Sequence record: NC_048048.2
Direction: 5' to 3' (one strand)
Length of the DNA: 64,000 nt
The notes under the pieces are model-generated. The model searched no databases and had not been told where the DNA came from. It was given only the letters and a program-made list of their open reading frames with translations. The translations under genes and the position numbers were made by a program. Position 1 is the first letter of the stretch, and the number at the start of each line of letters is the position of its first letter. Shown here piece after piece: positions 3,608 to 23,548 of the stretch.

Positions 3608-3702
3608 CGCATACAAGAAAACTGTTGCCAAGCCCCAAAGATCGCTTGACAGCATAAAAGCCCAATGCGACAAGGGGACATCCAAACGGGAGACACCCCC
3701 CA

Positions 3703-4275
3703 ATGACCACCGAAACCCTCGACCTCCTCTATCCGGTCCTGATGCTGGAGCAGAAGATTCCCCACCGCGAAGGCATGTTGCGGCTGGCCATCGTCCTGCG
3801 CGACTTCGGCCCCAAGGCGCCCCATCGCTACGTCACCCACCTGCGGGCTGAAAACCCCGTGCCGGGCTCTGACCACGCCTTCACCTACAGCTATGAGCAT
3901 GGCACCTATTCGGCCGACCTGCGCCGCGCCCTGGCCGTCTATTTCGAGCGCGTCACCGAGCGGGTCATGACCGCCATGGTCGTGCTCCACGACCTGCCCG
4001 AGGTCGCGCCGCCGGCGCCGACCGTCACCGTGCCGCTCGAACTGGCCCAGACCGCCTATGGCCTGATCGATGACAACGAACTGGACCTCTCCAAGGCCTG
4101 CGGCAACGTCACCTTGGTCGAGGCCGCCATTACCGGTCTGGCCGCCGTCCTGGGACCGCGCCGCTACTTCCGCGATGTCGAGGAAGGCAACGCCAAGCTT
4201 CTGGAGGCCTTCGAAGCCCAGCAAGCCGCGCGTGACGCGGCCCTAGAAGCCGAATCCGAAGAGGAAGAGGCCTAA
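3703..4275 (+). CDS. Hypothetical protein (cassette gene)
   Basis: Follows promoter 3646 and GGGAGACACCCC leader/RBS. Confidence 0.85.
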   Translation: MTTETLDLLYPVLMLEQKIPHREGMLRLAIVLRDFGPKAPHRYVTHLRAENPVPGSDHAFTYSYEHGTYSADLRRALAVYFERVTERVMTAMVVLHDLPEVAPPAPTVTVPLELAQTAYGLIDDNELDLSKACGNVTLVEAAITGLAAVLGPRRYFRDVEEGNAKLLEAFEAQQAARDAALEAESEEEEA

Positions 4276-4445
4276 AAAGCCCGCCCAGGCCTCCCCGGCC
4301 TGGGCGTGAGCCCTCCAGGGGCCGTTAAGGTTAACGCCAGGGGCCGGGACGTTAAGGTTAAGGCCGAAAATAGTGCGAGAAACCTGTTGACACGCATTGC
4401 GGCCCTATGCGAGAACAAGGCTCCACTTCATGAGGAGCGCCAAGC

Positions 4446-5072
4446 ATGGCCCTGCCCGATCACTTCCTGGTTTCCGTCGACGGCTCGCTCTATGACACGC
4501 GGGTGCAAGGCTGGAACCAAGCCGCGCCGCTGCGGATCAATTACCGGATCGTCAATCGCGACATCCACGGCATGAGCGAGGTCAAGGCCGCCTTGCGCTG
4601 CGGCGCCTTTACCGACATCGGCGGCTATCCGCTGTATTTCGTCACGCAGGACGGCCGCGCCCTGTCCTTCGACAGCGCCCGCAAGATGCTCTATCAGATC
4701 GCCGACGATTTCCAGCATGGCGCCTCGACCGGCTGGCGGATCACCGGCGCCCTCATCAACTACGAGGATCACGACCTCGTCTGCGATCACAGCGGCGAGA
4801 AGATTCCGGCCGCCTATGATCCGGTGCAATGGGCCGCAGGCTGCAATGTCTCGGGCTTCATGCCCGACAGCGAGCCTTCCCACCATGCGACCTGGGAAGA
4901 GGCCAAGGAAGACTTGCGCGCCCAGGTCGAACTGGCGCGCGAGCCCTACGAGATCGGTTCGGACGAGGACGACGCCCTAGCCCGCGTCGCCCGCGCCCTG
5001 GAGGCCCTTAAGGAAGGCCAAGAGCTTAACATGGGCGCCATCGGCTATCGCTGGTGGGTCGAACGCCTGTAA
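4446..5072 (+). CDS. Hypothetical protein, conserved phage family (GGYPLYFVT..DG / INYED.DL.CDH)
   Basis: Follows promoter 4387; GAGGAG RBS. Confidence 0.85.
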   Translation: MALPDHFLVSVDGSLYDTRVQGWNQAAPLRINYRIVNRDIHGMSEVKAALRCGAFTDIGGYPLYFVTQDGRALSFDSARKMLYQIADDFQHGASTGWRITGALINYEDHDLVCDHSGEKIPAAYDPVQWAAGCNVSGFMPDSEPSHHATWEEAKEDLRAQVELAREPYEIGSDEDDALARVARALEALKEGQELNMGAIGYRWWVERL

Positions 5073-5093
5073 ACCAAGGAAAGGACCCCTTCC

Positions 5094-5240
5094 ATGTTCA
5101 TTCTCATCGTCGGCAATCCCAGCGACGGCTTCACTTATTACGGCCCCTTCGACGAGCATGACGACGCCGTCACCTATGCCGAGGCGACCGGCACCGAGGG
5201 CAACCCCTGGTGGGTCGCGCCCCTGGAAGCGGCGGACTAG
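5094..5240 (+). CDS. Small hypothetical protein (48 aa)
   Basis: AAGGA RBS; MFILIVGNPSDGFTYYGPFDEHDDAV...; manually translated. Confidence 0.7.
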   Translation: MFILIVGNPSDGFTYYGPFDEHDDAVTYAEATGTEGNPWWVAPLEAAD

Positions 5241-5246
5241 CCCGTC

Positions 5247-5381
5247 ATGACCGCTCTCGAAAAGCGCGGCTACAAGGCCGCCCAGGCGGGCGTCAAGTGG
5301 TGGAACAACCCCCACCCCAGCGGCTCCCCGGCCGCCTATCAGTGGGACAAGGGCCACACCCGCCACCGCCTCGGACGCTAG
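5247..5381 (+). CDS. Rmf/CrpP-fold-like small protein (44 aa)
   Basis: MTALEKRGYKAAQAGVKWWNNPHPSGSPAAYQWDKGH; the RGYxA..G....NP.......W..G pattern resembles Rmf RGYQAG...CPY...WLGGW. Confidence 0.5.
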   Translation: MTALEKRGYKAAQAGVKWWNNPHPSGSPAAYQWDKGHTRHRLGR

Positions 5382-5384
5382 CCG

Positions 5385-5410
5385 AGCCCAGGCCTTCGCG
5401 CCTGGGCTTT
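5385..5410 (+). terminator. Intrinsic terminator
   Basis: AGCCCAGGC/GCCTGGGCT stem followed by a short T run. Confidence 0.55.
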
Positions 5411-5560
5411 GCCCGCCCCCTGGGCGTTAAGGTTAAGGCCGAAAATAGTTCAAGAAACCTGTTGACACGCATCAGGCTCCCATGCGAGAACAGGATCAGA
5501 CGAAACGACAAGACCACAAAGGAGGCCGCCATGAAGTAGCGACAATCTGGAGCACAACTC

Positions 5561-5947
5561 ATGGAATTCTTCGTCCGCACCACGCTGGTCAGCATCGCCC
5601 GCCACTGGGAGGACGGCGCCGACGTGATCGCCACCTGCTATTGCGTCTGTGTCGAGTACCCGGACGGCGCCCGCTATGTCCACGACTATCAGCCGGTCGA
5701 CCGCTATGTCAGCGCCGACGACGAAGGCGAGCCCATCTATCCCTGGCGGGACGGCGAGGCCATCAAGGCCAAGCTGGACGCCTTGCGCGATGAGATCGCC
5801 GCCCACGTCGCCGCTGGCGGGAGCCTCGATCCTGGCCACTGGTTCGAGGTCGATCCGCGCTACGGCTCCCCGGCCTATATGGGCCTGGACGCCTTCGGGT
5901 TCTTCCGGGCGCGCGAAAAGCAAGAGGCCGCCGAGCGCGGCGACTGA
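5561..5947 (+). CDS. Hypothetical protein
   Basis: GGAG RBS, downstream of promoter 5462. Confidence 0.8.
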   Translation: MEFFVRTTLVSIARHWEDGADVIATCYCVCVEYPDGARYVHDYQPVDRYVSADDEGEPIYPWRDGEAIKAKLDALRDEIAAHVAAGGSLDPGHWFEVDPRYGSPAYMGLDAFGFFRAREKQEAAERGD

Positions 5948-5952
5948 CACCC

Positions 5953-5982
5953 AAAAGGCCCGCCCATCCGGCGGGCCTTTTT
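5953..5982 (+). terminator. Intrinsic terminator (possibly bidirectional)
   Basis: AAAAGGCCCGCC-CATCC-GGCGGGCCTTTTT. Confidence 0.85.
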
Positions 5983-6129
5983 CCTTGACCACCGCCTGGG
6001 GTTAACCTTAAGGCCGCGTTAAGGTTAAGCCCGCCCAGGCCCGTAAAAAGATGCAAGAAACCTGTTGACACGCATGGAAGGCCTATGCGAGAACAGGGCT
6101 CAACACCAACGCCAGCCGGGAGACACCCC

Positions 6130-6720
6130 ATGGCCCTCGTCACCGAATCCTTTGTCGTCGATCTGGCCTGCGGGCGCGCCCTGACCAACGGCGAGCGCCG
6201 CATGGTCGCCGCCGTGATCGACTCGCTTCTCGACCCGCATTTCAAGTCGACCGCCTGGGTCAAGGGCGGCGACCATCGCGAGGCCGTCCACTACTGCGAC
6301 CGCGTGACGCCCTACAGCCTGCACGGCGAGAACGCCAACGCCGCGCGCGTGCGCACCGAGGCCCTGACCACCCGCGACCATGACGCCCCCGTCCTGCTGT
6401 CGCTGTCGGTCGGCGACACCATCGGCGAAATCGCCCGCTTCTACACCATCGCCGCCGCTGTCGAATATCTCGACGGCAACCCCGATATCGATCCGACCTC
6501 GCTGCACATGGGCGCCTACACCATTGACGCCCCGTTCGGCGTGGCCAATGACATCGAGGCTGACAAGCTCCTCTATGACCTGGGCTATCGCCTGCACGCC
6601 ATGGCCGGCGGGTCCTGGACCTACAGCGATCCGCAGGGCCGCCTGTGGGACGGCGGCGGCAAGCGCGAAGCCGTGGTCATGATCGCTCTGAAGCAAGCCG
6701 CCGACGCTGAAGAGGCCTAA
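6130..6720 (+). CDS. Hypothetical protein
   Basis: Start reassigned to the ATG after GGGAGACACCCC; the ORF-track start at 6085 is the promoter ATG. Confidence 0.85.
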   Translation: MALVTESFVVDLACGRALTNGERRMVAAVIDSLLDPHFKSTAWVKGGDHREAVHYCDRVTPYSLHGENANAARVRTEALTTRDHDAPVLLSLSVGDTIGEIARFYTIAAAVEYLDGNPDIDPTSLHMGAYTIDAPFGVANDIEADKLLYDLGYRLHAMAGGSWTYSDPQGRLWDGGGKREAVVMIALKQAADAEEA

Positions 6721-6725
6721 GGCCC

Positions 6726-7049
6726 GTGAAGCGCCGTCACGCCCTCTTCCTGTCGGTGATCGCTTCGGCGCCCGACGTGGTGATCCTGCAAGCTCCGGCG
6801 CACTTCCTGCGCTGGAGCGACCACCGCAAGGCCATCCTGGCGTTCATGCGCCAGACCTACGGCGTCAAGGCCGCCGACGTTCACGCCGTCGAAGGCGTCG
6901 CCGGCTATGCCGAACCCGACCCGACCGACGACCCCGCCGTCCTGGCGCGCTTTCAAGCCGCCTTCGCCGGGTCTGACAACTTCCCCAAGGTCGCCCTGGC
7001 GGCCTGGGACGGGCAGGCCTATCGGCTGGTCCGCCGGCCTCTGGCGTGA
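6726..7049 (+). CDS. Hypothetical protein
   Basis: GTG start directly after the upstream gene. Confidence 0.7.
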   Translation: MKRRHALFLSVIASAPDVVILQAPAHFLRWSDHRKAILAFMRQTYGVKAADVHAVEGVAGYAEPDPTDDPAVLARFQAAFAGSDNFPKVALAAWDGQAYRLVRRPLA

Positions 7050-7173
7050 GGCCGCCACCGCCCAGGCTTAACCTTAACGTGGCGTTAAGGTTAAGGCCGA
7101 AAATAGTTCAAGAAAGCTGTTGACAGCATAGGAGGCTTATGCGAGAAAGGCTCATCGAAACGGGAGACACCCC

Positions 7174-7689
7174 ATGGACGACACCTATCCGCCCCTGACC
7201 CCCGGCCAGCAAGCCGCCCTGGTCGCCTTCGCCGACCAGCATGGCGGCCTGGGCGAGGCCTGGAAAGAGGCCCTGAGCGACGCCTGGAGGACGTGCAGCG
7301 AGCCCGATGCGCTCAAGGCCGACCTGCGGACCATCCGCAACACCTATGGCCCCTCCTGGCTCTATGACGAATACGCCTGGGGCTGGCGCCCGACCCTTCC
7401 CGACTGGGAGCGCGCCGGCCGCTGGACCGACACCCCGCCGCAGCCGACGCCGGGCAAGGCTCGCTGGAGCGCCGCCTTCGACCCGCCGGCCATCGGCGAC
7501 CGGGTGCGCGTGACCACCAACGGCCTGGGCTGGGCGCGGGTCACCGGCTACTTCGTCGAAGCCGACTGGCTGGGCGTGATTGTCAAGCTGGAGGCCCCGG
7601 CCGACTGGTATGTCAAACAGAACGGCGGCAACGTCCCCGGCCACAGCTTCGGGACCGAGATCGCCCTGACCGACCCCGCGACCGACTGA
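7174..7689 (+). CDS. Hypothetical protein
   Basis: Promoter 7120 plus GGGAGACACCCC leader. Confidence 0.85.
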   Translation: MDDTYPPLTPGQQAALVAFADQHGGLGEAWKEALSDAWRTCSEPDALKADLRTIRNTYGPSWLYDEYAWGWRPTLPDWERAGRWTDTPPQPTPGKARWSAAFDPPAIGDRVRVTTNGLGWARVTGYFVEADWLGVIVKLEAPADWYVKQNGGNVPGHSFGTEIALTDPATD

Positions 7690-7869
7690 CCTGGACGGCC
7701 CTGGCTGGGAGACCAGCCGGGGCGAGGCCTAACCCGGCGCGGTTAACCTTAACCGCCCATTAAGGTTAACCGCCGGCGCCCTGGGGCGGGCGAAAGAAAA
7801 TGCAAGAAAACTGTTGACACGCATCTGAGGGCTATGCGAGAAAGGGCCATCGAACAACGGAGGCCCCTC

Positions 7870-8712
7870 ATGGCCAAGCTATTCAGCGACCTTCAGGACC
7901 TTGCCAACTCGACCTATGTCGTGCGCATCGTCGACAATGGCGGCCAGAGCGCCGACCGCTACACGATCGTCACCGCCGATGGCGACTATTACGCCTACAG
8001 CGCCAATCCCGCCCATCCCCAAGGCGTGGGCCTGAGCGGCGAGGGCATCGACCCGCAAGTGCTGGTCGACTGGGTGGAGCGCGGCGAAGCCGTCGACCTG
8101 ACCATCGGCGAGCTACCCGAGGCCGCCGCCCGCTGTCTGCTGGCGTCGATCAACGCCAGCGTCGAGGACTTCCTGTCGGCTGTCGAGGACCCGACCAGCA
8201 ACGCCGTGGCCCCGACCCGCGAAAAGGCGGAGATCAATGACGGCGTGATGGATTGCTTCGGCAAGGGCATCTATCGCGTGGGCGAGGGTTTCGCCGTGCG
8301 CATGGATGGCCTGGACGCGGGCGATGATCGCGGCCCCTTCATGAGCGCTGTCGAGGCGGTCAAGGCCACCCTCCCCGATGAATACGCCTGGGCTGGCGAG
8401 GAATACCTGTCGCCGCGCGACATGACCAAGATCACGCCCGAAGCCAAGCCGCTCGTTCTGGTCCACGCCCTGGAGGCCATTCGCGACTATGAATATCAGC
8501 GCGACAACCCCGGCTCGTTCTTCGACGGGCTGAACGAGGACGACACTGACGCGGGCCTGGGCATCGTGCGCCGCACGCGCTACCTGTCCAAGGTCACCGA
8601 TGATGCGACCATCGTCGGGCTGATCGGCGAGGCGCCGGCCTTCGCCCTGGCCCATGAATGTCTCGACCAACTGTGGACCCTGGCGCAAGAGCGGTGGGAG
8701 GCGGGCCAGTGA
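7870..8712 (+). CDS. Hypothetical protein (acidic)
   Basis: Promoter 7814, GGAGG RBS; start reassigned to MAKLF. Confidence 0.85.
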   Translation: MAKLFSDLQDLANSTYVVRIVDNGGQSADRYTIVTADGDYYAYSANPAHPQGVGLSGEGIDPQVLVDWVERGEAVDLTIGELPEAAARCLLASINASVEDFLSAVEDPTSNAVAPTREKAEINDGVMDCFGKGIYRVGEGFAVRMDGLDAGDDRGPFMSAVEAVKATLPDEYAWAGEEYLSPRDMTKITPEAKPLVLVHALEAIRDYEYQRDNPGSFFDGLNEDDTDAGLGIVRRTRYLSKVTDDATIVGLIGEAPAFALAHECLDQLWTLAQERWEAGQ

Positions 8713-8912
8713 GCGCCCGCGAACGCCGCGCCCTCTCCGAACTGCTGGCCCTGTTCCACGCGGTCAACAGCGGCCACGTCAAGGGCCGCAACCCCTACGC
8801 CTTCCCGGCCGTCAAGCTCGCCAACGAGGTATTGACGGGCGACCCGCTGGACGGGGTTTCCACGTCGCCGAAGCCCTGGACCGGCATCGCGAGGCGGACG
8901 GCAAGGCCTTGA
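8709..8912 (+). CDS. Small hypothetical protein
   Basis: GTGA overlap with the upstream stop. Confidence 0.6.
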   Translation: MSARERRALSELLALFHAVNSGHVKGRNPYAFPAVKLANEVLTGDPLDGVSTSPKPWTGIARRTARP

Positions 8913-9067
8913 TTTTCGAGGTCGGCGGTTGCCCGGACGGCTGCTTGCTGTCCTACAGCGGCGCGGTTCCGCGCTGCGTCAACTGCGACACCGAATATCC
9001 CGAAGAAAACGGTTGACAGCATAAGGGAGCTATGCGAGAAAGGGTCATCAACGGAGACACCCCGCCC

Positions 9068-9208
9068 ATGTGGACCGAAAAGACCTTCAAGACCCGCGCC
9101 GCCAAGGAGGCCTGGATCGCCCGCAATGAAGACCGCTATCAGATCGTCGAGATCGTGGTCTGCAACGCCTACGGCGTGACCTACAAGCCCCTCCGACGCG
9201 TCTACTAG
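9068..9208 (+). CDS. Small hypothetical protein (46 aa)
   Basis: Promoter 9013, GGAGACACCC leader; MWTEKTFKTRAAKEAWIARN... Confidence 0.75.
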   Translation: MWTEKTFKTRAAKEAWIARNEDRYQIVEIVVCNAYGVTYKPLRRVY

Positions 9209-9218
9209 GAGACCTCGC

Positions 9219-9410
9219 ATGATCCCCGACTCGGTCCGTAACCCGCAAGATCATTGGACCCCCATCGCCACCCGCGCCAAGGCTGACGCCCTGGCCTATC
9301 GCTACAACCAAGATGACGCCGGCCCCGGCCTCTACGAGGTCCACGAAAAGGGCGAAAGCTTCGCCATCGCCTACTATGACGAAGACGGCGCCTTCTGCGG
9401 CTACGTCTAA
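9219..9410 (+). CDS. Small hypothetical protein
   Basis: AGGAG RBS; followed by a terminator. Confidence 0.75.
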   Translation: MIPDSVRNPQDHWTPIATRAKADALAYRYNQDDAGPGLYEVHEKGESFAIAYYDEDGAFCGYV

Positions 9411-9428
9411 CCCGCTCCTGTCAACTTG

Positions 9429-9466
9429 AAGGCCGGCGCCGCTCTCCTGGCGCCGGCCTTTTTCTT
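9429..9466 (+). terminator. Intrinsic terminator
   Basis: AAGGCCGGCGCC/GGCGCCGGCCTT stem plus TTTTTCTT. Confidence 0.85.
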
Positions 9467-9619
9467 GCCCGCCGCCTGGGTCTTAACCTTAAGGCGAGAT
9501 TAAGGTTAACGCCGCCTTAAGGTTAACCGGTGCCCCGCATCCCGCCCGGATGCAAAAAACCTGTTGACACGCATTTCGACCCTATGCGAGAAAGGCGACG
9601 AACACGGGAGACACCCCTT

Positions 9620-10618
9620 ATGACCACGACCATTCCCGGCGCCGAGCATACGATGATCGGACAAGCCGCCTATCGCTCGACCAAGCGCCCCGACCAAGTG
9701 CGCGAGATGGCCTATGGCGCGTTCCCGGCCGCGACGTCGGACTCGCCCTTCGCCGTCAAGCCGGCCTGTGGCAAGGTCCCGAGCGCGCGCGTGCTGGAGG
9801 ACTTCGACCCCGCCGACGTCTTCACGACCAGAGCCAATGATCGCGGCGGCTTCTATGCCTCCGCCAACTTCGGCGGCTCTGAGGTGTCGTGGATCAGCAT
9901 CGCCGGCTATGGCGACACCGAGGAGGCCGCCCGCGCCGATCTCATGGCCCGGTTCATCGCCGACCGCGACGGCAAGGGCAAATTTGGCCCTCACCATCCC
10001 CTGGTCGGCTATGACTGGGGCTATAAGCTCGCCCCGTTCTGGGACATGCTGGAGCGCGAGGCCGCCATTCGCCAGCCCTTCAAGCGCCAGCTTTACCTGG
10101 GCAAGCTGAAGTCCGGCCGCCCTAATCCCAAGGGCTTTGACGTGTTCGTCGATGTCGAATGGACCGGCGTGCGCCTGTCGCTGTCGGGCGTCATCGGCCC
10201 CAAGGCCAATGGCAACGCCTGGGACGGCGCAGGCCAGATCGTCGGCAGTCTCAAGCGCAAGGACTTTCTGGAGTTCGCCCCGTCCTGGCATTATGGATCG
10301 GCCCTTGACGGTCTGGTCCAGGCCTGGACCCGCTGGCACCTGAACGACCTGCGCGCCGGCACGCTTCGGCAGGAAGACCACCTGCGCGGCTATGAGGCCA
10401 AGCGCAACATTGAGCAGGCCAAGGCCGCCGGCGCCCATTCTCTCGACGCCACCCGCGCCGAACTGGCGCGCGTCCATATGGAGCCCGACACCTGGGAGCG
10501 CCACAACGGCCGGCCCTATAGCTACGGCTCCGCATGGCTTCGCGAGGAGGTCCCCACCTACGTTCTCGACTTCCTGCGCAATCTCCCCGCCCCCACCAAA
10601 ATCAGCCCCTGGAGGTAA
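9620..10618 (+). CDS. Hypothetical protein (332 aa; WHLNDLRAG / YGSAWLREE motifs)
   Basis: Promoter 9564 plus GGGAGACACCCC leader; start reassigned. Confidence 0.85.
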   Translation: MTTTIPGAEHTMIGQAAYRSTKRPDQVREMAYGAFPAATSDSPFAVKPACGKVPSARVLEDFDPADVFTTRANDRGGFYASANFGGSEVSWISIAGYGDTEEAARADLMARFIADRDGKGKFGPHHPLVGYDWGYKLAPFWDMLEREAAIRQPFKRQLYLGKLKSGRPNPKGFDVFVDVEWTGVRLSLSGVIGPKANGNAWDGAGQIVGSLKRKDFLEFAPSWHYGSALDGLVQAWTRWHLNDLRAGTLRQEDHLRGYEAKRNIEQAKAAGAHSLDATRAELARVHMEPDTWERHNGRPYSYGSAWLREEVPTYVLDFLRNLPAPTKISPWR

Positions 10619-10625
10619 CCCGCCC

Positions 10626-11060
10626 ATGGCCATCAACACCGCCGGCCTCGTCGGCAAGCTCAAGGAAGCCCTCGCCGCCGCCCCCAACCTGACCCTATGG
10701 GCCAAGGAACGCGGCCTCTTCCATCAGAACGTTTCGGCCGCCGCGCGCGGCGACACCGTGCCGCAAGAAAGCATCGCCAAGGCCCTGGGCTTCCGACGCG
10801 TCCACGTCCAGGCCTATCTGGCGCCGGGCGAAGCCCTGCCGCTCCTGCCGCCCGGCTGGGAGGAGGTGCTTCCCGGTTCGGCGACCCCGGTCGACTGGAA
10901 GCCCCGCGACAAGGCCGCCGCCCCCGCCCCGCGCCGGGTCGGTTCGCCCGACCAGATGGCCAAGGCCCGCGACGCGCGCCGGCCGCGTTCCGCGCCGGTC
11001 CAGCCCCCGGCCCAAACCGCCGGCAAGCCTCGCCGCAAGAAAGTGCAAGAAACCGGTTGA
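10626..11060 (+). CDS. Putative HTH DNA-binding protein
   Basis: GGAGG RBS; NLTLWAKERGLFHQNVSAAARGDTVPQESIAKALG resembles an XRE/Cro-type helix-turn-helix; basic Pro-rich tail. Confidence 0.6.
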   Translation: MAINTAGLVGKLKEALAAAPNLTLWAKERGLFHQNVSAAARGDTVPQESIAKALGFRRVHVQAYLAPGEALPLLPPGWEEVLPGSATPVDWKPRDKAAAPAPRRVGSPDQMAKARDARRPRSAPVQPPAQTAGKPRRKKVQETG

Positions 11061-11110
11061 CAGCATAAGGCGGCTATGCGAGAAAGGCTCATCACTTCTG
11101 GAGCAAGCCC

Positions 11111-11580: not shown

Positions 11581-11725
11581 GTCTGTCCCCCGCCCGGCGA
11601 TAACCTTAACGCCGCGTTAAGGTTAACCCCCTGGGACGGGGGGCGCCGCCGCAAAAACTGCAAGAAAACTGTTGACACGCATTTCGACCCTATGCGAGAA
11701 AGGCGCATCAACCACGGAGGACAAC

Positions 11726-13884: not shown

Positions 13885-13948
13885 CAAGGCTGTTGACAGC
13901 ATCAAGGCCCTATGCGAGAAAGGCTCATCGCCACCGGAGACACCCGCG

Positions 13949-14255: not shown

Positions 14256-14425
14256 GCCCCGCGCCTGGGGTTAACCTTAACGCCGCCTTAAGGTTAACCC
14301 GGCCGGATCGTTTTTCGTCTTTTGTGTCGGGCCGTCTTTCGTTTTCCGTGTCGAGGTGCAAGAAAGCTGTTGACAGCATAAAAGCCCTATGCGAGAAAGG
14401 CTCATCGCAACCAAGGAGCCCGACC

Positions 14426-15532: not shown

Positions 15533-15675
15533 GTCAAGGCCCGCCCATCCCCCTGGGCGGGCCTTGTCCTGGGCGATCGGCGTTAACCTTAACGCGCAAG
15601 AAAACTGTTGACACGCATTGCAGCCCTATGCGAGAAAGAGCGCCTAGGCCGCTTTGGCCCCTGGAGACTTGCGTC

Positions 15676-16659: not shown

Positions 16660-16697
16660 GCGAATGTAGCAAGCGGCGCTTTCGTGTCAAGAAATGC
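16660..16697 (-). promoter_or_regulatory. RpoD-type promoter (CGCATTTC-TTGACA-N14-GCTACATT)
   Basis: 7/8 match to the Caulobacter -10 GCTANAWC; divergent from cassette promoter 16717. Confidence 0.6.
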
Positions 16698-16789
16698 GAC
16701 ATGGGCTAGAATCCTGTTGACACGCATTGCGGTCCTATGCGAGAAAGATCGGGCAAAGGCGCATCCCGCGCCGCTGGGAGACACCCCGC

Positions 16790-17560
16790 ATGGACCTGAC
16801 CACCTTTACGGCCAAGGCTGATTTCGTGCTCTGCAATGAGCCGGTGACCATCACCGTCAAGCCCGCCGGCCGCCCGCTCTACCTGTCGTTTTCCATCGAC
16901 CAGATCGGCATGATCGGCGGCGCCGAGGAGCTTTACGCCAAGGCCGAACAACACGGCGTCGAGGACCTGATAACGGTTCTCAACATTTCCAACGTCCTGT
17001 CGCTGAAGTCCATCGAGACCTATGACGACGAAGACCGCGAGGCCGTCGAAAGCCTGCGCTACGCCCTGCTCATGCTCGACGGCGAGCGCTACGCTTCGGA
17101 TGTCCAGTTCGAGGACGTGGACGAGGCCGAGTTTTCCAACCGCGACGACACCATTGACAGCCGGCAAATCGTCGAGCGGGTCGAGGTGCTTCGGAGCGCC
17201 CTGGAAACCGCCGGCTTCGACACCGCCGACCTGTCCGCCCTGGAAGACCTCGACGCCGACGAAGCCGTCAAGGACGCCGACCAGCGCGACGCCTTCAACG
17301 CCATCCGCGAGGAATTCCTGATCCTGGCGCGCATGGTCGAGGAGGGCGGCAACTACGGCGAGGATTGGCGGTTCGGCGCGACTCTGGTCCGCGAATCCTA
17401 CTTCACCGAGTTCGCGCAAGAAGAGTGCGAAAGCCTGGGCTTCATCTCCAAGGACTTCCCGTCCTGGATCGCCATCGACTGGGAAAAGACCGCCGAAACG
17501 ATGCTACACGACTACACCGAAATCGACTTCGACGGCGTGAGCTACTACGTCCGCGCCTAG
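16790..17560 (+). CDS. ArdA-like acidic anti-restriction (DNA mimic) protein
   Basis: Very D/E-rich; C-terminal FPSWIAIDWEKTAETMLHDYTEIDFDGVSYYVR resembles the ArdA C-terminus from memory. Confidence 0.6.
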   Translation: MDLTTFTAKADFVLCNEPVTITVKPAGRPLYLSFSIDQIGMIGGAEELYAKAEQHGVEDLITVLNISNVLSLKSIETYDDEDREAVESLRYALLMLDGERYASDVQFEDVDEAEFSNRDDTIDSRQIVERVEVLRSALETAGFDTADLSALEDLDADEAVKDADQRDAFNAIREEFLILARMVEEGGNYGEDWRFGATLVRESYFTEFAQEECESLGFISKDFPSWIAIDWEKTAETMLHDYTEIDFDGVSYYVRA

Positions 17561-17623
17561 GTGAAGCTCCTCGAAGGCGGCGGCCTGCTCGCGCTCTGCT
17601 TCCTCCTCTGGTTGCTTCACTAA
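17561..17623 (+). CDS. 20-aa hydrophobic micropeptide, copy 2 (MKLLEGGGLLALCFLLWLLH)
   Basis: GTG immediately after the ArdA-like TAG; synonymous divergence from 13822. Confidence 0.75.
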   Translation: MKLLEGGGLLALCFLLWLLH

Positions 17624-17626
17624 ACC

Positions 17627-17662
17627 CGGCCGGCGTCCATGACCTGGGCGCCGGCCTTTTCT
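17627..17662 (+). terminator. Intrinsic terminator
   Basis: GGCCGGCG../..CGCCGGCC stem followed by TTTTCTT. Confidence 0.65.
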
Positions 17663-17720
17663 TACCGCGCCGATCGGGGTTAACCTTAACGCCGTCTTAA
17701 GGTTAACGGCGGGCCTGGAG

Positions 17721-17849
17721 GCGAGGGCGTCAAGGCCGCGAGCTAGGATTACACGCGATGGCTTAGCCGGCGTCCAGCCGGCGGCGCCTTCGACCACCGC
17801 GAGGCGGCCTTGACCCTCGCAATCTCGCCGATCCGCGACCAAGTGTCAA
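17721..17849 (-). ncRNA. Candidate antisense small RNA with its own promoter
   Basis: Minus-strand TTGACA (17849-17844)-N15-GCGAGATT (17828-17821); 11+6 bp closing stem 17721-17739/17804-17820; no credible ORF. Confidence 0.45.
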
Positions 17850-17934
17850 CCGTTTTCTTTTTCCAAGAAACCTGTTGACACGCATCGAACGCCTATGCGA
17901 GAAAGACTCAACGTCAACGCCTGGAACCCTATCC

Positions 17935-18591
17935 ATGCCCCGCACCGTCACCAAACAGGTCTACACCTTCAAGGAACTGAATCCCAAGGCCAAGCAAAAG
18001 GCCATCGAGTGGTATCGTGGCCTGAACGATCAAGACTCCGGTTGGTGGGATTTCGTCTATGACGAAGCCGACCGCATCGCCGAAGCCTTCGGGATCACCC
18101 TGCGCCGCAAGGAAGCCGGCAAGCCCAATAGCGGCCCGGACATCATGTTCACCGGCTTCTGGAGTCAAGGCGACGGCGCCTGTTTCCAAGGCCGCTACGA
18201 GTCGCCCCAAACCCCGGCCGTCGAAGCCTTCGCCGCCCTGGGGATCGAAGACGCCACGCTCAAGGCTCTGGCCGCCCGCCTCGACGCCCTGAGCGCCAAG
18301 GTGCGCTTGATCAGCACGGTCAAGCACTCCGGTCACTACTATCACGAGTATTGCACCGACTTCGAAACCGAGCGCATGGTTCCCGACGACGCCGGCGACG
18401 ACTTCGATATCTACGATTTCGACCACGAGGACGAAAAGGAACTGATCGACATTCTTCGCAGCTTCATGAAGTGGATTTATCGCCAGCTTGAGGCCGTGGA
18501 CGAAGATCGCAATTCCGATGAGACGATCAGCGAAACCCTGACCGACTCCGATTACGAATTCGAGGCGGACGGCTCGCCGACCAACGACTAG
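17935..18591 (+). CDS. Conserved MGE protein (family often auto-annotated 'antitoxin of toxin-antitoxin stability system')
   Basis: Motifs VYTFKELNPKAKQKAIEWYR and FTGFWSQGDGACF recalled from alphaproteobacterial ICE/plasmid proteins; function unproven. Confidence 0.6.
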   Translation: MPRTVTKQVYTFKELNPKAKQKAIEWYRGLNDQDSGWWDFVYDEADRIAEAFGITLRRKEAGKPNSGPDIMFTGFWSQGDGACFQGRYESPQTPAVEAFAALGIEDATLKALAARLDALSAKVRLISTVKHSGHYYHEYCTDFETERMVPDDAGDDFDIYDFDHEDEKELIDILRSFMKWIYRQLEAVDEDRNSDETISETLTDSDYEFEADGSPTND

Positions 18592-18765
18592 GCCAAGCCC
18601 GCCGCGCCCGGCCTCAACGCCGGGCGCGTGTCGGGTTTTGGTTTTTCAAGGTCCTGTTAAGGTTAACGAAAAAAGCCCTCGGACGGCCTGAGAAAAACGC
18701 AAGAAAACTGTTGACACGCATCCAAGCCCTATGCGAGAAAGGCTCATCGCAACGGGAGACACCCC

Positions 18766-19053
18766 ATGACGACCCAAGCCAAGAAGCGCCGCAAGCGCTA
18801 CCCGCCCAAGAGCGACGCGGCCAAGGCCCGCGCCGCCGCCAAGAGCAAGGCGTTCTTCGCCCGTCACGCGCTCAAGGCCACCGAGGCCACGATTGCCGCC
18901 ATGAAGGCCGGCGATCAAAAGGCCGTCCAACGCCACGCCAAGGACGCCCGGCGCCTGACCCGCTGGATGAACCACAAGCGCGACATCGCCGCCGCCTTCG
19001 CGGCCGTCTTCAACATTCGGGCCGCCGCCCAAGCCCTGAGAGCCGCCGCATGA
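18766..19053 (+). CDS. Basic Lys/Arg/Ala-rich small protein
   Basis: Promoter 18711 plus GGGAGACACCCC leader. Confidence 0.8.
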   Translation: MTTQAKKRRKRYPPKSDAAKARAAAKSKAFFARHALKATEATIAAMKAGDQKAVQRHAKDARRLTRWMNHKRDIAAAFAAVFNIRAAAQALRAAA

Positions 19054-19265
19054 CCCGTCGCCCTGCCTTTCTGACCGTCCTGGGCGGGATTGGCCTCATC
19101 CTGGCCAGCTTCGTCCTTTCGGCCGCCAGCGCCCCGGAAAAGCGGGTTCTCGTGGGTCAATACTGCGACGGCGACCCCGTGCGCCTCTACGGCCTGGAAG
19201 ACGGCGAGGAAGCCGCGCAAGCGTGCGCCATCGTCGAAGTCCACGCCCTGCCCAAGGGCTTCTGA
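19050..19265 (+). CDS. Small secreted/membrane protein
   Basis: ATGA overlap; N-terminal hydrophobic segment. Confidence 0.65.
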   Translation: MTRRPAFLTVLGGIGLILASFVLSAASAPEKRVLVGQYCDGDPVRLYGLEDGEEAAQACAIVEVHALPKGF

Positions 19266-19267
19266 CC

Positions 19268-19525
19268 ATGGCCGCCCCGAACGACAGCCGCGAGGAGCCG
19301 GTCAAGGTCGAAGACCTCAAGGGCGGCATGATGTGCGATCTTGAGGGCGACATGTACGCCGACAACGCCGGGCGCTTCCCGGAATTCGAGTTCGCCTATG
19401 CCGTCGTCGTCGAAGTCGACACGGCCCCGCGCTACGAGGCGCCGGGGACGGTCCTGGTCGAGTTCGACAAGATCACCGTGGCCTTTCCCAAGGGCCACAC
19501 CCTGCCGACCATCAAGGAACCCTAG
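19268..19525 (+). CDS. Hypothetical protein
   Basis: TGACCATG junction. Confidence 0.7.
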   Translation: MAAPNDSREEPVKVEDLKGGMMCDLEGDMYADNAGRFPEFEFAYAVVVEVDTAPRYEAPGTVLVEFDKITVAFPKGHTLPTIKEP

Positions 19526-19527
19526 AC

Positions 19528-20061
19528 ATGGAACGCCTCAACGTCCACGTGCTGACCGTCACCTATGACAGCGGCAACCCCGTCCCGCCGTTCGTCGCCC
19601 TGGGCATGTCCAAGGAGGAACTTGACGACACCCTGGAGGCCCTGGCGCGCGAGGAAGTCGATAACCGCTATTTCGAGGAAGAAGACCTCTTAGACGACCT
19701 CGCCAAGTTCCTGACCGCCGAACGCGTCGCCGAGCTTGAGCCCCTGGGCCTGGACGCCATCGGCCTACTGACTCCGGTCGAAATCGTCGACATGGCCAAG
19801 CGCTTCGCCTCGATCACGCCAAGCTTTGACGTGCTCCCGCTCTACCGCGACCCGCCGCCCGTCCGCGCCTTCGATCTCGACGACCGCGAAGCCGCCGCCG
19901 TCCTGACCGGCCTGCGCATGATCCAAGCCCAAGGCGTCCCGGACGATCTCGACGACCTCGCCACCAATGGCGGCGCCTTCGAGCCCCTGGACGGCGACGC
20001 CATCGACGGGCTCTGTGTGCGGATCAATTTCGACGTGACCGGCGAGGCGCCGGCCTCCTGA
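19528..20061 (+). CDS. Hypothetical acidic protein
   Basis: Operon-packed. Confidence 0.8.
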   Translation: MERLNVHVLTVTYDSGNPVPPFVALGMSKEELDDTLEALAREEVDNRYFEEEDLLDDLAKFLTAERVAELEPLGLDAIGLLTPVEIVDMAKRFASITPSFDVLPLYRDPPPVRAFDLDDREAAAVLTGLRMIQAQGVPDDLDDLATNGGAFEPLDGDAIDGLCVRINFDVTGEAPAS

Positions 20062-20141
20062 CGCAAGAAAGCTGTTGACAGCATAATCCGCCTATGCGAG
20101 AAAAGGCTGTCAACGGCGATCCCCGCCGCATGGAGACACCC

Positions 20142-20486
20142 ATGAAGTTCATCAAGACCGACATCCTCGACCACGGCCGCGCCTCGACCCTGCGCAACGC
20201 CCTGGGCACGGCCCTGGAGCGCTACACCGAAATCGGCAAGGAATTCGAGGGCTACCTGAACGACTATCAGGCCCTGGACGAGGCGGGCAAGGAAGCCTGG
20301 AAGGCCCGCAACCACTGGATCAACCCGCGCGCCCTGCCCGACCTCAAGACCCAGTTCGAGCGCCAAGCCGCCGACGTGCAAGACCTCATCAACTGGCTTG
20401 ACGGCGACAAGTTCATGAACGAAGACGGCGATTTCCCCAAAGGGACCGAGTTCACCATTGTCGCCGGCCTGATCCGCGACTTCTAA
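20142..20486 (+). CDS. Hypothetical protein
   Basis: Promoter 20075, GGAGACACCC leader; start reassigned. Confidence 0.8.
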   Translation: MKFIKTDILDHGRASTLRNALGTALERYTEIGKEFEGYLNDYQALDEAGKEAWKARNHWINPRALPDLKTQFERQAADVQDLINWLDGDKFMNEDGDFPKGTEFTIVAGLIRDF

Positions 20487-20497
20487 ACGCCCTGGTC

Positions 20498-20524
20498 AAG
20501 GCCCGCCCTCACGGCGGGCCTTTT
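20498..20524 (+). terminator. Intrinsic terminator
   Basis: AAGGCCCGCC-CTCAC-GGCGGGCCTT plus T run. Confidence 0.85.
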
Positions 20525-20680
20525 CCTTGACCTCGCGCCGTTGTTAACCTTAACGTGCAATCGTTCGCCTGTTAACCTTAACGGGACATGCCTGATCCGT
20601 TAACCATAGCCTGCAAAAAAGCTGTTGACTCGCATCCAAGCCCTATGCGAGAAAGGGTCATCAGCAACGGGAACGATCCC

Positions 20681-21079
20681 ATGACCCAAGAATACACCGC
20701 CGAAGAACGCCAAGCCAAGTTGACCGAAATGGCCGATCACTGGCGCGAGCAACTGAAGGACGCCCAAGCCCGCCTGGACATGACCGTCCTCGTCGGTCAA
20801 GGATTCGTCTGCGCTCTGGAGCGCGATCTTTCCATGGCTATCCGCGCTGACGGTCCCGACCGCTATCGCCTGTGGCCAGTATCGGCGCGCATGGTTCCCA
20901 TCCTCCACTTCACCAAACTTGACGCCATGCGGGTCGCCGCGCACTGGAATGGCAACCTCCCCGACGATAAGCAGGACCTGCGAGTCGTCGCCACCCATTA
21001 CCGCGACGTGCTTCAAGCCTATGTCGAGACCGCAACGGCGCAAATCGCCTGGATCGAAGGCGGCTGCAAGGCCGCCTGA
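20681..21079 (+). CDS. Hypothetical protein
   Basis: Promoter 20625; start reassigned to MTQEY. Confidence 0.75.
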   Translation: MTQEYTAEERQAKLTEMADHWREQLKDAQARLDMTVLVGQGFVCALERDLSMAIRADGPDRYRLWPVSARMVPILHFTKLDAMRVAAHWNGNLPDDKQDLRVVATHYRDVLQAYVETATAQIAWIEGGCKAA

Positions 21080-21269
21080 CCTTGACGCCCTCCGGCTCCG
21101 GCCGGAGGGTTAATTTCTGCCCAGCCCGCGTTAAGGTTAACCCGCCGCCGGCCTGGGATTAACCTTAACCCGCAACCGTTTGCGGGTTAACCATTCGATG
21201 CAAGAAAGGTGTTGACACGCATTTAGGCCCTATGCGAGAAACGCCTATCAGCAACCGGGAAACACCCCC

Positions 21270-21833
21270 ATGCCGCAATTCGTTCTCGACACTTCGGGCA
21301 AGGCCCGTGTTGGCGCCACCAAGAATTTTCCGAACGGCGTCACCATCAACTGGAATGATCTCGACGCCTTCACCCAAGGCTATATCGAGGCGCTGTTTTT
21401 CACCGAAAATTCCCCGGCCTTCACGTCGGACGAATGGCACGGCGAGGAATGTCAAGCCGCGCTTGAGGCCGGCACGTCTGACGGCTCGCTCCCCGGTGAC
21501 GCCGGTTTCGCCGACCTTCATGAAACCGCCCTGGCCACCATCGTCGAGGAGTGCGCCGCCTTCCAACGCGAAAACGCCGACCTGTTGGCGCAAGCCTATG
21601 GCCACAACTTCCCGGCGCGGGTGATCGGCGACGGCACCTTGCCCGATTCCCACCGCCCGGCGTGGGACTATGACGAGGCGGCGGCGGGGCGGGATTTCTG
21701 GTACACTCGCAACGGCCATGGCGTCGGCTTTTGGGATCGCGGCCTAGGCGAGGTCGGCGACAAGCTTTCCGACGCCTGCCGTTACTCTGAGGTTTACGTG
21801 TCGTTCGAGGCTGACGGCAAGGTTCATCTCTAA
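21270..21833 (+). CDS. Conserved phage hypothetical (AGRDFWYTRNGHGVGFWDRG motif)
   Basis: Promoter 21212 plus GGGAAACACCCC leader. Confidence 0.85.
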   Translation: MPQFVLDTSGKARVGATKNFPNGVTINWNDLDAFTQGYIEALFFTENSPAFTSDEWHGEECQAALEAGTSDGSLPGDAGFADLHETALATIVEECAAFQRENADLLAQAYGHNFPARVIGDGTLPDSHRPAWDYDEAAAGRDFWYTRNGHGVGFWDRGLGEVGDKLSDACRYSEVYVSFEADGKVHL

Positions 21834-21839
21834 CCCGGC

Positions 21840-21867
21840 AAAGGCCCGCTTGACAGCGGGCCTTTTT
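21840..21867 (+). terminator. Intrinsic terminator
   Basis: AAAGGCCCGCT-TGAC-AGCGGGCCTTT plus TT. Confidence 0.85.
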
Positions 21868-21995
21868 CGTGCCTGCCCCACCTGGGTTAACCTTAACGCC
21901 AGCCCGCTTCGCCTTAACGCTCTTTTTGCAAGAAAACAGTTGACTCGCATCCAAGCCCCATGCGAGAAAAGGTCATCAACCACGGAGCGCCGCAC

Positions 21996-22370
21996 ATGGC
22001 CAAAACCGAAACCGTCGACCTCGCCCTGGTCATGCTCGATGAGCAAAAGGCCGCCCTGGGCGCCTCCCGGACCTTCACCTTTCACGAAGTCCGCGCGGCG
22101 TTCATCGACGCCAAGGCCCTGACCACGCTTGAGGCCACCTTGCACAAGATCGCTGAACACGAGTGCAACGGCTATCGCAGCGACATCACCGAACGTTTCG
22201 ACATCCGCCGCCGCGACAAGGCGCAAGCCGCCGCCACGGCCATTGCCGAGCGCTACGGCCTGACGCTCGATTTCAACGGCGACCCGCGCGGTTCGGCCCT
22301 GAAGATCAAGACCCCGCACACCGGCCGTTACAACGGCTTTGGCGGGCGTGAGGATGGATGGTGCGTCTAG
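21996..22370 (+). CDS. Conserved phage hypothetical (FNGDPRG..LKI motif)
   Basis: Promoter 21940, GGAG RBS; start reassigned. Confidence 0.8.
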   Translation: MAKTETVDLALVMLDEQKAALGASRTFTFHEVRAAFIDAKALTTLEATLHKIAEHECNGYRSDITERFDIRRRDKAQAAATAIAERYGLTLDFNGDPRGSALKIKTPHTGRYNGFGGREDGWCV

Positions 22371-22439
22371 CGCCATCCTGACCCCCTTCCACCCCCTGTA
22401 GCGCGTCCCTCTCAAACCCCTGGCCCTAGGAGACACCCC

Positions 22440-22610
22440 ATGGCCCGCACCACCACCCACACCCGCACCGACAAGGCCAAGCGCGAGACGCTGGCGCCGT
22501 GGGAATATGACCGCCAGCACAAGGCGGACAAGAAAGCCGCCAAGGCGTGGCGCACCGATCGCCAAGGCCGCCGCGCCCTGGCCTCTTCGGACGCCTTCAA
22601 GGCCCACTAG
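22440..22610 (+). CDS. Small basic protein (56 aa)
   Basis: AGGAGACACCCC leader; manually translated MARTTTHTRTDKAKRE... Confidence 0.75.
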   Translation: MARTTTHTRTDKAKRETLAPWEYDRQHKADKKAAKAWRTDRQGRRALASSDAFKAH

Positions 22611-22703
22611 GCGGGCTCGAAAAAAGTTCGGCTCGATGCGAGAAAGCTGTTGACTCGCATCGAGCCCCTATGCGATAAAGGGTCATCAAACGGAGACACC
22701 GAC

Positions 22704-22868
22704 ATGACCCACCTGCAACGCGCCACCACCGACCAAGTCACCGTCGAGCACTACGCCGTTTCGGGCGGTCAACTGACCGTCACCCGCGCCCCCGCCCGCG
22801 CCCCGATCTATCGCCTGAACGGCTTCAAGATCACCTACTTCGAGGCCAAGCGTAAGCTCGCCGCCTAA
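22704..22868 (+). CDS. Small hypothetical protein (54 aa)
   Basis: Promoter 22650, GGAGACACC leader. Confidence 0.75.
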   Translation: MTHLQRATTDQVTVEHYAVSGGQLTVTRAPARAPIYRLNGFKITYFEAKRKLAA

Positions 22869-22882
22869 GACCCCTCCCCGAT

Positions 22883-22912
22883 AAGGCCCCCTCCCTGGAG
22901 CGGGGCCTTTTT
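22883..22912 (+). terminator. Intrinsic terminator
   Basis: AAGGCCCC..GGGGCCTT stem plus TTT. Confidence 0.75.
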
Positions 22913-23102
22913 CGTGGCCGTTAGCCAAGCGTTAAGGTTAACCCGTAGGGTTGATTTCGTTAACCTTAATGGGGCGTTAAGGTTAACGGGCCGGCCCAGG
23001 CTGTTAACCCTGCGGGCGAAGAAAGTGCGATCCTGTGCAAGAAAGCTGTTGACTGCATAAGCGTCCTATGCGACAAAGGGTCATCAACAACGGAGCTACC
23101 CG

Positions 23103-23273
23103 ATGTCCTTCCGCCTGACCCTCACTGACGAAGCCCGCTTCACCGCCGCGCGCGGCGCGGTCCGCACCGTCCGCGAACAGGCCCGCCCTGAGCCGGCCAA
23201 GGACGGCTCGGGCAAGTACGTCCTGGCCTCGCAAGACGCTCTGTCGCGCATCCGCGCCGTGCTGGGCAACTAA
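23103..23273 (+). CDS. Small hypothetical protein (56 aa)
   Basis: Promoter 23049, GGAG RBS; MSFRLTLTDEARF... Confidence 0.7.
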   Translation: MSFRLTLTDEARFTAARGAVRTVREQARPEPAKDGSGKYVLASQDALSRIRAVLGN

Positions 23274-23276
23274 GCC

Positions 23277-23462
23277 ATGAAGGTCACGGCGCACTATGGC
23301 AACGGGCTCTCGCGGGTGATCCCCTGCGAGACGCCGCAAGCCGCTCTGGACGCGATCAAAGCCGCGCTGCGCTATGATCGTTCGGCGACCTTCACGGTTG
23401 ACAAGCGCCTCACCCAAGGCGCGCCGACCCGCGCGGCCTCCGAACGGGTTTGGCTGCTGTAG
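23277..23462 (+). CDS. Small hypothetical protein
   Basis: Operon-packed. Confidence 0.65.
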   Translation: MKVTAHYGNGLSRVIPCETPQAALDAIKAALRYDRSATFTVDKRLTQGAPTRAASERVWLL

Positions 23463-23548
23463 AAGAAAAAAGCGAGTCGACGCAAAAAAGCTGTTGACTC
23501 GCATAAGGCCCGTATGCGATAAAAGGTCATCAGCAACGGAGACACCCG

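Follow-up and report, generated by a model that had tools for sequence, protein, structure and literature searches.

In the lambdoid phages lambda, 434 and P22, the small helix-turn-helix (HTH) protein Cro is made from an early operon and occupies two-fold symmetric operators of 14-18 bp that lie over the RNA polymerase (RNAP) site. Here, an arrangement that is probably of the same kind is described for bases 1-64000 of Caulobacter phage CcrSC (MH588547.2 / NC_048048.2; Bertelyvirus SC; genome 317,489 bp), referred to below as the window. Within it, 23 promoters carry the dyad GCAT-N9-ATGC, approximately 17 bp in length, between the -35 and -10 elements, and gp018, the product of an open reading frame (ORF) inside the same array, is tentatively proposed as the protein that binds it. 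As with Cro, gp018 is a small HTH protein from an early operon, its structural model superposes on 434 Cro, and the expected consequence of binding is that early transcription, and with it the regulator's own, would be turned down. Unlike the lambdoid phages, in which tripartite OL and OR operators serve two promoters, CcrSC would place a single operator in every one of its 23 array promoters (46 per genome), and no divergent cI partner is evident. Furthermore, half of the operator coincides with the promoter's own extended -10, the half-sites are 13 bp apart from centre to centre, and gp018, whose binding is here only predicted, adds a conserved Pro-rich extension and a basic tail. The best structural matches of gp018 are the XRE dimers HipB and DdrO. 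HipB-type dimers bind TATCC-N8-GGATA, the half-sites of which are also 13 bp apart from centre to centre, the same spacing as in the CcrSC dyad. HipB and DdrO are, however, cellular toxin-antitoxin or stress regulators with few operators, and have no above-threshold sequence homology to gp018.

Short sites repeated tens of times, by which one protein acts over many units, are represented by the P1 C1 operators and the L5 gp71 stoperators. Those sites are asymmetric and bound by monomers, stoperators are located in transcribed regions where they block elongation, and the proteins are immunity repressors of temperate phages. In contrast, the CcrSC dyad is symmetric, lies only in promoter spacers, is confined to the direct terminal repeat (DTR), and outside those spacers is found only in chance-level copies. 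The pre-early (first-step-transfer) genes of T5 resemble the CcrSC array in another respect, forming a long DTR packed with small genes without an assigned function behind strong host-type promoters that need to be shut off as a set. T5, however, requires its A1 protein for shut-off, through a mechanism that is not understood, and is not known to have a shared spacer dyad, in which respect CcrSC differs. Finally, CtrA boxes are clustered in the DTRs of phiCbK-like phages (Mascolo et al. 2022, PMC9437464), and their distribution in CcrSC agrees with that description. These boxes also wire many promoters of the same compartment to one regulator, but they have the form TTAA-N7-TTAA, are placed upstream of the promoter and not in the spacer, and respond to a regulator of the host. 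That paper makes no mention of the GCAT dyad, and in the literature searched neither these promoters nor the dyad were found described. The system would be familiar in kind, in that a phage HTH regulator would act on an operator that overlaps early promoters. What is unusual is the use of one operator per promoter across the whole array, the sharing of half of that operator with the extended -10, and a conversion of the array that extends across the genus.

The dyad is present in 25 exact copies in the window, compared with 0.95 +/- 0.96 expected from dinucleotide-preserving shuffles (maximum 4). Twenty-four of these copies fall in 3652-23518, of which 23 are located between a TTGAC[A/T] -35 and a G-A-n-A-A-A -10. 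The left DTR covers bases 1-23946 (annotated, 23.9 kb) and has its second copy at the right genome end, and the dyad-promoter array lies wholly within it. Genome-wide there are 54 copies, namely 25 in each of the two DTRs and 4 in the other ~270 kb, the latter in coding-looking DNA and at chance level. In the CcrSC genome, no other half-site spacing from N0 to N20 was enriched. The -35 is flush with GCAT in 8/23 promoters and separated from it by one extra base, always C, in the other 15/23 (CGCAT-N9-ATGCG). An earlier note, made from the letters of the window alone, had claimed the dyad for all 23 promoters, with 8 copies flush and 15 one base away; a pattern search with inspection of the flanks gave 23/23 and exactly reproduced both counts.

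The anatomy of these promoters was analyzed in an alignment of 77 unique sequences from CcrSC, CcrBL9, C2, and BL47. In all 23 CcrSC promoters an A-rich upstream element, GCAAGAAAnCTG, precedes a -35 of TTGACA or TTGACT, after which a spacer of 17 bp in flush promoters and of 18 bp in those of the +1 class leads to the G-A-n-A-A-A hexamer at -12 to -7, with a conserved start region, GGCTCATC, 3' of the hexamer. Transcription is predicted to begin at the A of TCATC, 6-7 nt beyond the hexamer. The dyad consequently spans approximately -29 to -13, the left half being located at ~-29 to -26 and the right half at ~-16 to -13. The TG of ATGC is at -15/-14, which is the extended -10 position, and is invariant in the 77 promoters. 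It is to be observed that the four bases of each half-site are invariant in this alignment because the sequences were chosen by the dyad, and that the unbiased counts are those from the orthologue and genus comparisons below. The G and A immediately after ATGC and the two As located two bases further were not selected for, yet are invariant or nearly so, the A at -11, the second base of the hexamer, being invariant. Within N9, the first four bases are essentially random and the last five are semi-conserved as GCCC[T/C]. TATGCG as the -10, with a 12-13-bp spacer, was ruled out since the C2 clade reads CATGCG, and a sigma-32-like or MerR-like promoter reading does not fit the spacing. Because the hexamer is without T at -12 and -7 and is unseen by an E. 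coli-type scan, we infer that the 23 sites are active promoters with the -10 and start given above from a -35 and an upstream element that are both perfect, from their placement ahead of each cassette, and from their homology to canonical promoters of a sister clade.

Orthologous promoters were paired by the similarity of the 200 bp downstream. Across 15 pairs between CcrSC and CcrBL9, the dyad displayed 0/120 changes, while N9 displayed 28/135 (21%) and the -10 hexamer 3/90; for 11 pairs between CcrSC and C2, the corresponding values were 0/88, 57/99 (58%), and 14/66. Overall, the dyad had 0/208 changes. The length of N9 was constant across pairs, including three in which the -35 offset switched between flush and +1 (SC 18711/BL9 17907; SC 17875/C2 19363; SC 23494/C2 23965), in agreement with the earlier suggestion that dyad geometry is more tightly held than -35/-10 spacing. 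The exact dyad is present in 23/24 DTR promoters of CcrBL9, 22/24 of C2, and 32/34 of BL47. The exceptions all affect the left half (GCTT with N8, GCCT, ACAT), two of them in the same orthologous promoter in two phages, and in three natural Bertelyvirus promoters the left half alone is lost. The most deviant promoter of the C2 clade is that of the gp017-gp018 operon. In one metagenomic relative, the dyad is kept with another N9 and adjoins a gp018 homologue. By these comparisons, the dyad is under strong purifying selection. Conservation through recent copying or gene conversion is ruled out because N9 has diverged to 58% between halves with 0/208 changes, and conversion cannot skip 9 bp.

The dyad is also specific to a promoter class and to a lineage. 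A second class of CcrSC promoters, with ~28 copies outside the DTR, has the same GCAAGAAAnCTG-GTTGACA, no dyad, and a canonical C[C/T]-TA[G/A]A -10 at 17-18 bp. This class (e.g. window 31974, - strand; genome 165-281 kb) serves replication and nucleotide-metabolism regions on both strands. In phiCbK and CcrPW no such promoters as those of the array were found, and dyads were at chance level only. The sister clade is represented by two metagenomic contigs with a large terminase (TerL) 57-58% identical, whose cassette arrays downstream of the terminase gene (L079 14452-22571; L080 14474-22661) include homologues of several CcrSC DTR genes. All promoters of these arrays have the form AACAAAAGAG-TTGACA-N17-TAGGAT/TAGATT-GGCTCATCAAC, without the dyad and with a conserved CATCAAC start region, and the CcrSC hexamer aligns with their canonical TAGGAT via the common GGCTCATC start region. 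Four sister-clade promoters with a GA-type hexamer have ATGn or GTGn before it (in one case ATGC-GACAAA), and GCAT in 0/4. By this comparison, the right half is largely an ancestral extended -10, and the left half GCAT is a Bertelyvirus innovation, which repeats the right half exactly, inverted and at a constant distance. Such an innovation argues against GCAT serving RNAP only, and for a two-fold symmetric trans-acting binder. The composite of promoter plus dyad was above chance in no bacterial species genome (29 single chance-level hits, none from Caulobacter), and a search of IMG/VR for wider relatives returned CcrBL9 only. Among sequencing runs, related sequence was found in DNA metagenomes only.

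Regarding gp018, nothing significant was obtained by direct searches of Pfam, PHROGs, NCBIfam, and PDB sequences, or by hhalign against the family of gp479, another HTH protein of the phage. Its neighbours in a protein language model were XRE, CII or DUF739-like at 0.93-0.94, at the level of a lead only, and a first AlphaFold2 (AF2) model from 4 sequences was poor, with a predicted local distance difference test (pLDDT) score of 47.6. A profile search with residues 1-95 against 1.84 billion representatives provided 31 relatives at E < 1e-3. In an aligned set of 26 of these together with gp018 and two orthologues (n = 29), Pfam matches were to YdaS (Cro-like HTH; 11/29), HTH_31 (8/29), and HTH_3 (7/29), and several relatives are tandem duplications of the HTH domain, an indirect hint at dimerisation. 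The AF2 model from the deeper alignment reached a pLDDT of 93.9 and a predicted template modelling score (pTM) of 0.82, with helices at residues 5-18, 22-28, 33-41, and 48-53. Its top Foldseek matches were all XRE-family HTH proteins (DdrO, HipB, 434 Cro, 434 repressor, and P22 c2), with 2.5 Å over 53 columns for 434 Cro; the E-values are weak, in line with a domain of only ~55 residues. As modelled, gp018 is a Cro/XRE-fold HTH protein, in which an N-terminal HTH (helices 22-28 and 33-41) is combined with PLLPPGWEEV, a Pro-rich motif that does not vary, and with a basic tail that does. The XRE/Cro-like HTH that the earlier note had read in ORF 10626-11060 is thus recovered through the Pfam matches of profile relatives and the AF2/Foldseek comparison, the direct searches being null. 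The putative recognition helix, HQNVSA..RG, is invariant. Close homologues occur only in Bertelyvirus genomes and in one metagenomic relative, all of which carry the dyad, and gp018 is the only HTH protein found here that matches the dyad's distribution. The contexts of distant homologues (contigs L112 and L113) displayed no comparable arrays. L113, a metagenomic phage contig that encodes an HTH protein distantly related to gp018, contains GAGAGTGTTGACTCCCGAC in each of three promoters (8195-8240, 11130-11170, and 11290-11330), with invariant spacer bases adjoining the -35.

The gp018 gene is the second of its operon, 8 bp after gp017, and is located downstream of the dyad-bearing operon promoter at 9564-9593 (dyad at 9571) with a further dyad at 9537. 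The statement that ORF 10626-11060 is itself transcribed from a dyad promoter is accordingly retained for the operon promoter, but the gene has no promoter of its own and gp017 comes first. The additional dyad at 9537-9553 is 34 bp upstream of the dyad in that promoter, with two CtrA boxes on one side of it and the A-rich upstream element on the other. It is kept in CcrBL9 (8861-8877, one N9 change) and absent in C2, and the gp017-gp018 operon promoter alone has such a second upstream dyad, in both CcrSC and CcrBL9. The additional dyad may serve as an auxiliary operator or may have arisen by chance. Another copy, at 2377-2393 (CcrBL9 1599), is located in the non-coding leader ahead of the first cassette, without promoter context, and is consistent with the chance rate of ~1 per 64 kb.

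With modest confidence, we favour the explanation that the dyad is the operator of a repressing regulator, for which gp018 is the best candidate. The 23 sites would be promoters of the DTR gene cassettes for host RNAP of the sigma-73/sigma-70 type, which would fire all 23 strong promoters (46 per genome). An early product would then dimerise and bind the 17-bp dyad across the spacer and extended -10, at one site per promoter, where the bound dimer would exclude or stall RNAP and the whole terminal-repeat regulon would be turned down together. If that product is gp018, made from a dyad promoter inside the array, a Cro-like negative feedback on early transcription would result. The parts of this explanation are not equally firm. 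That a protein binds the dyad is likely. Repression is, by a small degree, the most probable effect, since the dyad overlaps the sigma region 3 contacts and competition with RNAP would lead to shut-off. The assignment of the binding to gp018 is tentative, as are a master-switch role and autoregulation. The earlier proposal of a dimeric regulator at all 23 spacers survives in part. The comparative evidence fits a trans-acting two-fold binder, because the dyad is specific to one class, is under purifying selection, and is absent from promoters with the same -35 and upstream element and from the sister arrays. The right half ATGC, on the other hand, is explained at least in part by RNAP itself as its extended -10, and "binds the spacer" would be better put as "shares the extended -10 with sigma".

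A number of observations weigh against the operator explanation. Symmetry is limited to a core of 4 bp, or of 5 bp in +1 promoters, and conservation is not fully symmetric, since the GCCC[T/C] of N9 lacks a counterpart next to the left half. RNAP alone can account for most of the right half, through the TG of the extended -10 and the GC found in the Caulobacter consensus GCTANAWC. An E. coli-type promoter scan misses 23/23 of the sites, the hexamers of which are without T at -12 and -7, and promoters with a GAnAAA -10 may depend on an activator. The gp018 orthologue in BL47 and J4 is frameshifted by a 1-bp deletion in a C-run at ~codon 18 (BL47 11927-12198; flanking DNA identical to C2), and both phages keep all dyads despite the frameshift, which may reflect either a genuine mutation or an error of sequencing. 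Nor is gp018 alone in its phyletic match, since about half of the DTR genes are equally genus-restricted. Furthermore, the recognition helix of gp479 is invariant in Bertelyvirus and its closest relatives and differs in phiCbK and CcrPW, which have no dyad. This helix varies between genera as a specificity switch would need, making gp479 a possible binder.

The last observations lead to the alternative that the dyad is an operator with another binder, such as gp479, gp450, gp461, an unrecognised fold, or a host Caulobacter regulator that would couple early transcription to cell state in the manner of the CtrA boxes. This alternative overlaps with the operator model set out above and is somewhat unlikely. 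At least four HTH proteins besides gp018 are encoded in CcrSC. Among them, gp479 (genome 147182-147880) is CI-like, with HTH_3 and a conserved C-terminal domain, occurs throughout Dolichocephalovirinae, and adjoins the ribonucleotide reductase (RNR) and dUTPase genes; its recognition helix tracks the presence of the dyad in Bertelyvirus as against phiCbK and CcrPW, and a homologue with the same helix is encoded on the 266-kb metagenomic contig JASCQV010009068.1. Another binder would also accommodate the frameshift of gp018 in two dyad-bearing phages, and the DTR is already wired to a host factor, with all 12 full CtrA boxes inside it (PMC9437464). These points are opposed by the distribution of the candidates, as gp479, gp450, and gp461 are subfamily-wide, being common to phiCbK, Colossus, and CcrPW, which are without the dyad, whereas the dyad is genus-specific. 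Nor is there a GCAT dyad in the neighbourhood of the gp479 gene, upstream of which (147040-147180) a 7-bp inverted repeat, TCGCGTC-N5-GACGCGA, is present. The bacterial genome search, with the promoter-plus-dyad pattern above chance in no species and in no hit from Caulobacter, also speaks against such a binder. A 460-aa frame at genome 276832-278214, annotated as two hypothetical proteins, contains at least three HTH motifs (HTH_23, HTH_30, and Sigma70_r4-like); CcrBL9 matches only its last 57 aa, and the C2 clade no part of it. No recognisable Pfam DNA-binding domain is present in the remaining DTR proteins that were scanned (all but two under 50 aa).

It is distinctly unlikely that the dyad is a promoter-only element, in which the invariant bases would be host RNAP contacts (extended -10 plus a spacer or extended -35 determinant), the palindrome coincidental, and no regulator involved. 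Such an element would account for the TG of the right half at -15/-14, for the ATGn or GTGn ahead of all four GA-type sister-clade hexamers, for the asymmetric conservation of N9, and for the right half never varying while the left half occasionally does. The published Caulobacter promoter consensus, TTGACgS-N10-14-GCtANAWC, likewise has GC before the hexamer and S after TTGACg. Against such an element, GCAT at ~-29 to -26 is not known to be a sigma-70 contact, and it appears dispensable when judged by the conserved ATGn-GAnAAg promoters of the sister clade and by the ~28 CcrSC promoters with the same -35 and upstream element. In addition, its sequence is exactly that of the right half reverse-complemented, at a constant distance and with 0/208 changes, while the -35 slides by 1 bp.

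An activator on the dyad, either MerR-like and on the face of the spacer away from RNAP or sigma-appropriating, is quite improbable. Host RNAP would need it to use the weak GAnAAA -10, and the DTR genes would then be delayed and not immediate-early. Consistent with an activator are the -10 without T-12 and T-7, the centre of the dyad at ~-21 in the spacer, as in MerR-family operators, and the existence elsewhere in the genome of dyad-less promoters with canonical -10, possibly the true immediate-early class. The spacer, however, is 17-18 bp compared with 19-20 bp in MerR-type promoters, and CcrSC has no MerR-family gene beyond one sub-threshold MerR_1 match (E 0.014) at 204300. The consensus -35, upstream element, and extended -10 predict a promoter that is strong unaided, and no phage sigma, GcrA, or T7-type RNAP was found in CcrSC. 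More doubtful still is the view that the dyad is no simple off-switch but marks a promoter class peculiar to the phage, where a factor confined to Bertelyvirus (gp018 or some other protein) would sit in the spacer together with RNAP and have the extended -10 in common with it. This factor could be a co-activator or appropriator that licenses host sigma-73 holoenzyme at -10s without T-12 and T-7, or it could buffer output, keeping that of 46 x N strong promoters level against genome copy number during replication. If true, the array-wide conversion, compared with the canonical -10s of the sister clade, would be a wholesale rewiring of the pre-early regulon. Lastly, common descent or gene conversion only, a hairpin or cruciform, or a recombinase site for cassette shuffling is hardly credible despite the ~55-bp promoter module repeated 23 times, the tandem cassette amplification in BL47, and an encoded tyrosine recombinase, given the divergence of N9 to 58% between halves with 0/208 changes, the weak folding energies (-2.3 to -5.6 kcal/mol, 7-9-nt loops) on which hairpin or cruciform function was rejected, and 4-bp arms far shorter than known tyrosine-recombinase core sites.

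The DTR contains ~42 small genes, mostly rightward and nearly all annotated hypothetical. All 12 full CtrA boxes of the window are inside it (12/12; 3086-22966, e.g. 9489 and 9506), as are 109/118 of the TTAAC/GTTAA half-sites. Full boxes are located 50-100 bp upstream of 8/23 dyad promoters, as elements separate from the dyad, and boxes together with half-sites are clustered 30-110 bp upstream of ~14/23. The sole leftward gene of the array is gp031 (16366-16611, - strand; 81 aa), for which no informative matches were found. Its promoter at 16663-16690 (- strand) is canonical, TTGACA-N16-TG-n-TACATT, and is back to back with the dyad promoter at 16717-16746. At ~25300-30000 of BL47, a three-gene unit of ~885 bp with two dyad promoters is amplified ~5x in tandem, by which the terminal repeat of that phage has been lengthened to 30 kb. 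The tyrosine recombinase gene of CcrSC is at genome 155264-155992.

Table 1. Dyad promoters and associated features of the CcrSC window, from the dyad pattern search and inspection of the flanking -35 and -10; promoter coordinates span -35 to -10, and +1 denotes one base between the -35 and GCAT.
Feature	Coordinates	Strand	Remarks
Promoter 1	3646..3674	+	dyad 3652-3668, flush
Promoter 2	4387..4416	+	dyad 4394-4410, +1 (C)
Promoter 3	5462..5491	+	dyad 5469-5485, +1; left half lost in orthologues BL9 (GCTT-N8) and C2 (GCCT)
Promoter 4	6065..6094	+	dyad 6072-6088, +1
Promoter 5	7120..7148	+	dyad 7126-7142, flush
Promoter 6	7814..7843	+	dyad 7821-7837, +1
Promoter 7	9013..9041	+	dyad 9019-9035, flush
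Extra dyad, no own promoter	9537..9553	.	GCATCC-N5-GGATGC, 6-bp arms
Promoter 8	9564..9593	+	dyad 9571-9587, +1; ahead of gp017 and gp018
gp017	9620..10618	+	first gene of operon; no informative family or feature match
gp018	10626..11060	+	144 aa; candidate dyad binder
Promoter 9	11057..11085	+	dyad 11063-11079, flush
Promoter 10	11672..11701	+	dyad 11679-11695, +1
Promoter 11	13893..13921	+	dyad 13899-13915, flush
Promoter 12	14370..14398	+	dyad 14376-14392, flush
Promoter 13	15608..15637	+	dyad 15615-15631, +1
Promoter 14	16717..16746	+	dyad 16724-16740, +1
Promoter 15	17875..17904	+	dyad 17882-17898, +1; C2 orthologue flush
Promoter 16	18711..18740	+	dyad 18718-18734, +1; BL9 orthologue flush
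Promoter 17	20075..20103	+	dyad 20081-20097, flush
Promoter 18	20625..20654	+	dyad 20632-20648, +1; TTGACT-C gives a 6-bp dyad, TCGCAT/ATGCGA
Promoter 19	21212..21241	+	dyad 21219-21235, +1
Promoter 20	21940..21969	+	dyad 21947-21963, +1
Promoter 21	22650..22679	+	dyad 22657-22673, +1
Promoter 22	23049..23077	+	dyad 23055-23071, flush
Promoter 23	23494..23523	+	dyad 23501-23517, +1; C2 orthologue flush

The phiCbK-like jumbo phages are standard tools of Caulobacter research, and yet their early transcription programme is essentially unknown and ~40 terminal-repeat genes are without an assigned function. A 17-bp site in every DTR promoter provides an experimental handle on this programme, offering a single candidate regulator, a single operator, and N9 in 23 natural versions, and could become a small orthogonal promoter/operator pair for genetic work in Caulobacter. 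Set against the sister clade, CcrSC indicates that an entire promoter array can take on another regulatory design without a change in the genes that it serves. The finding may also have a bearing on the persistence of these phages as episomal pseudolysogens (PMC12195562).

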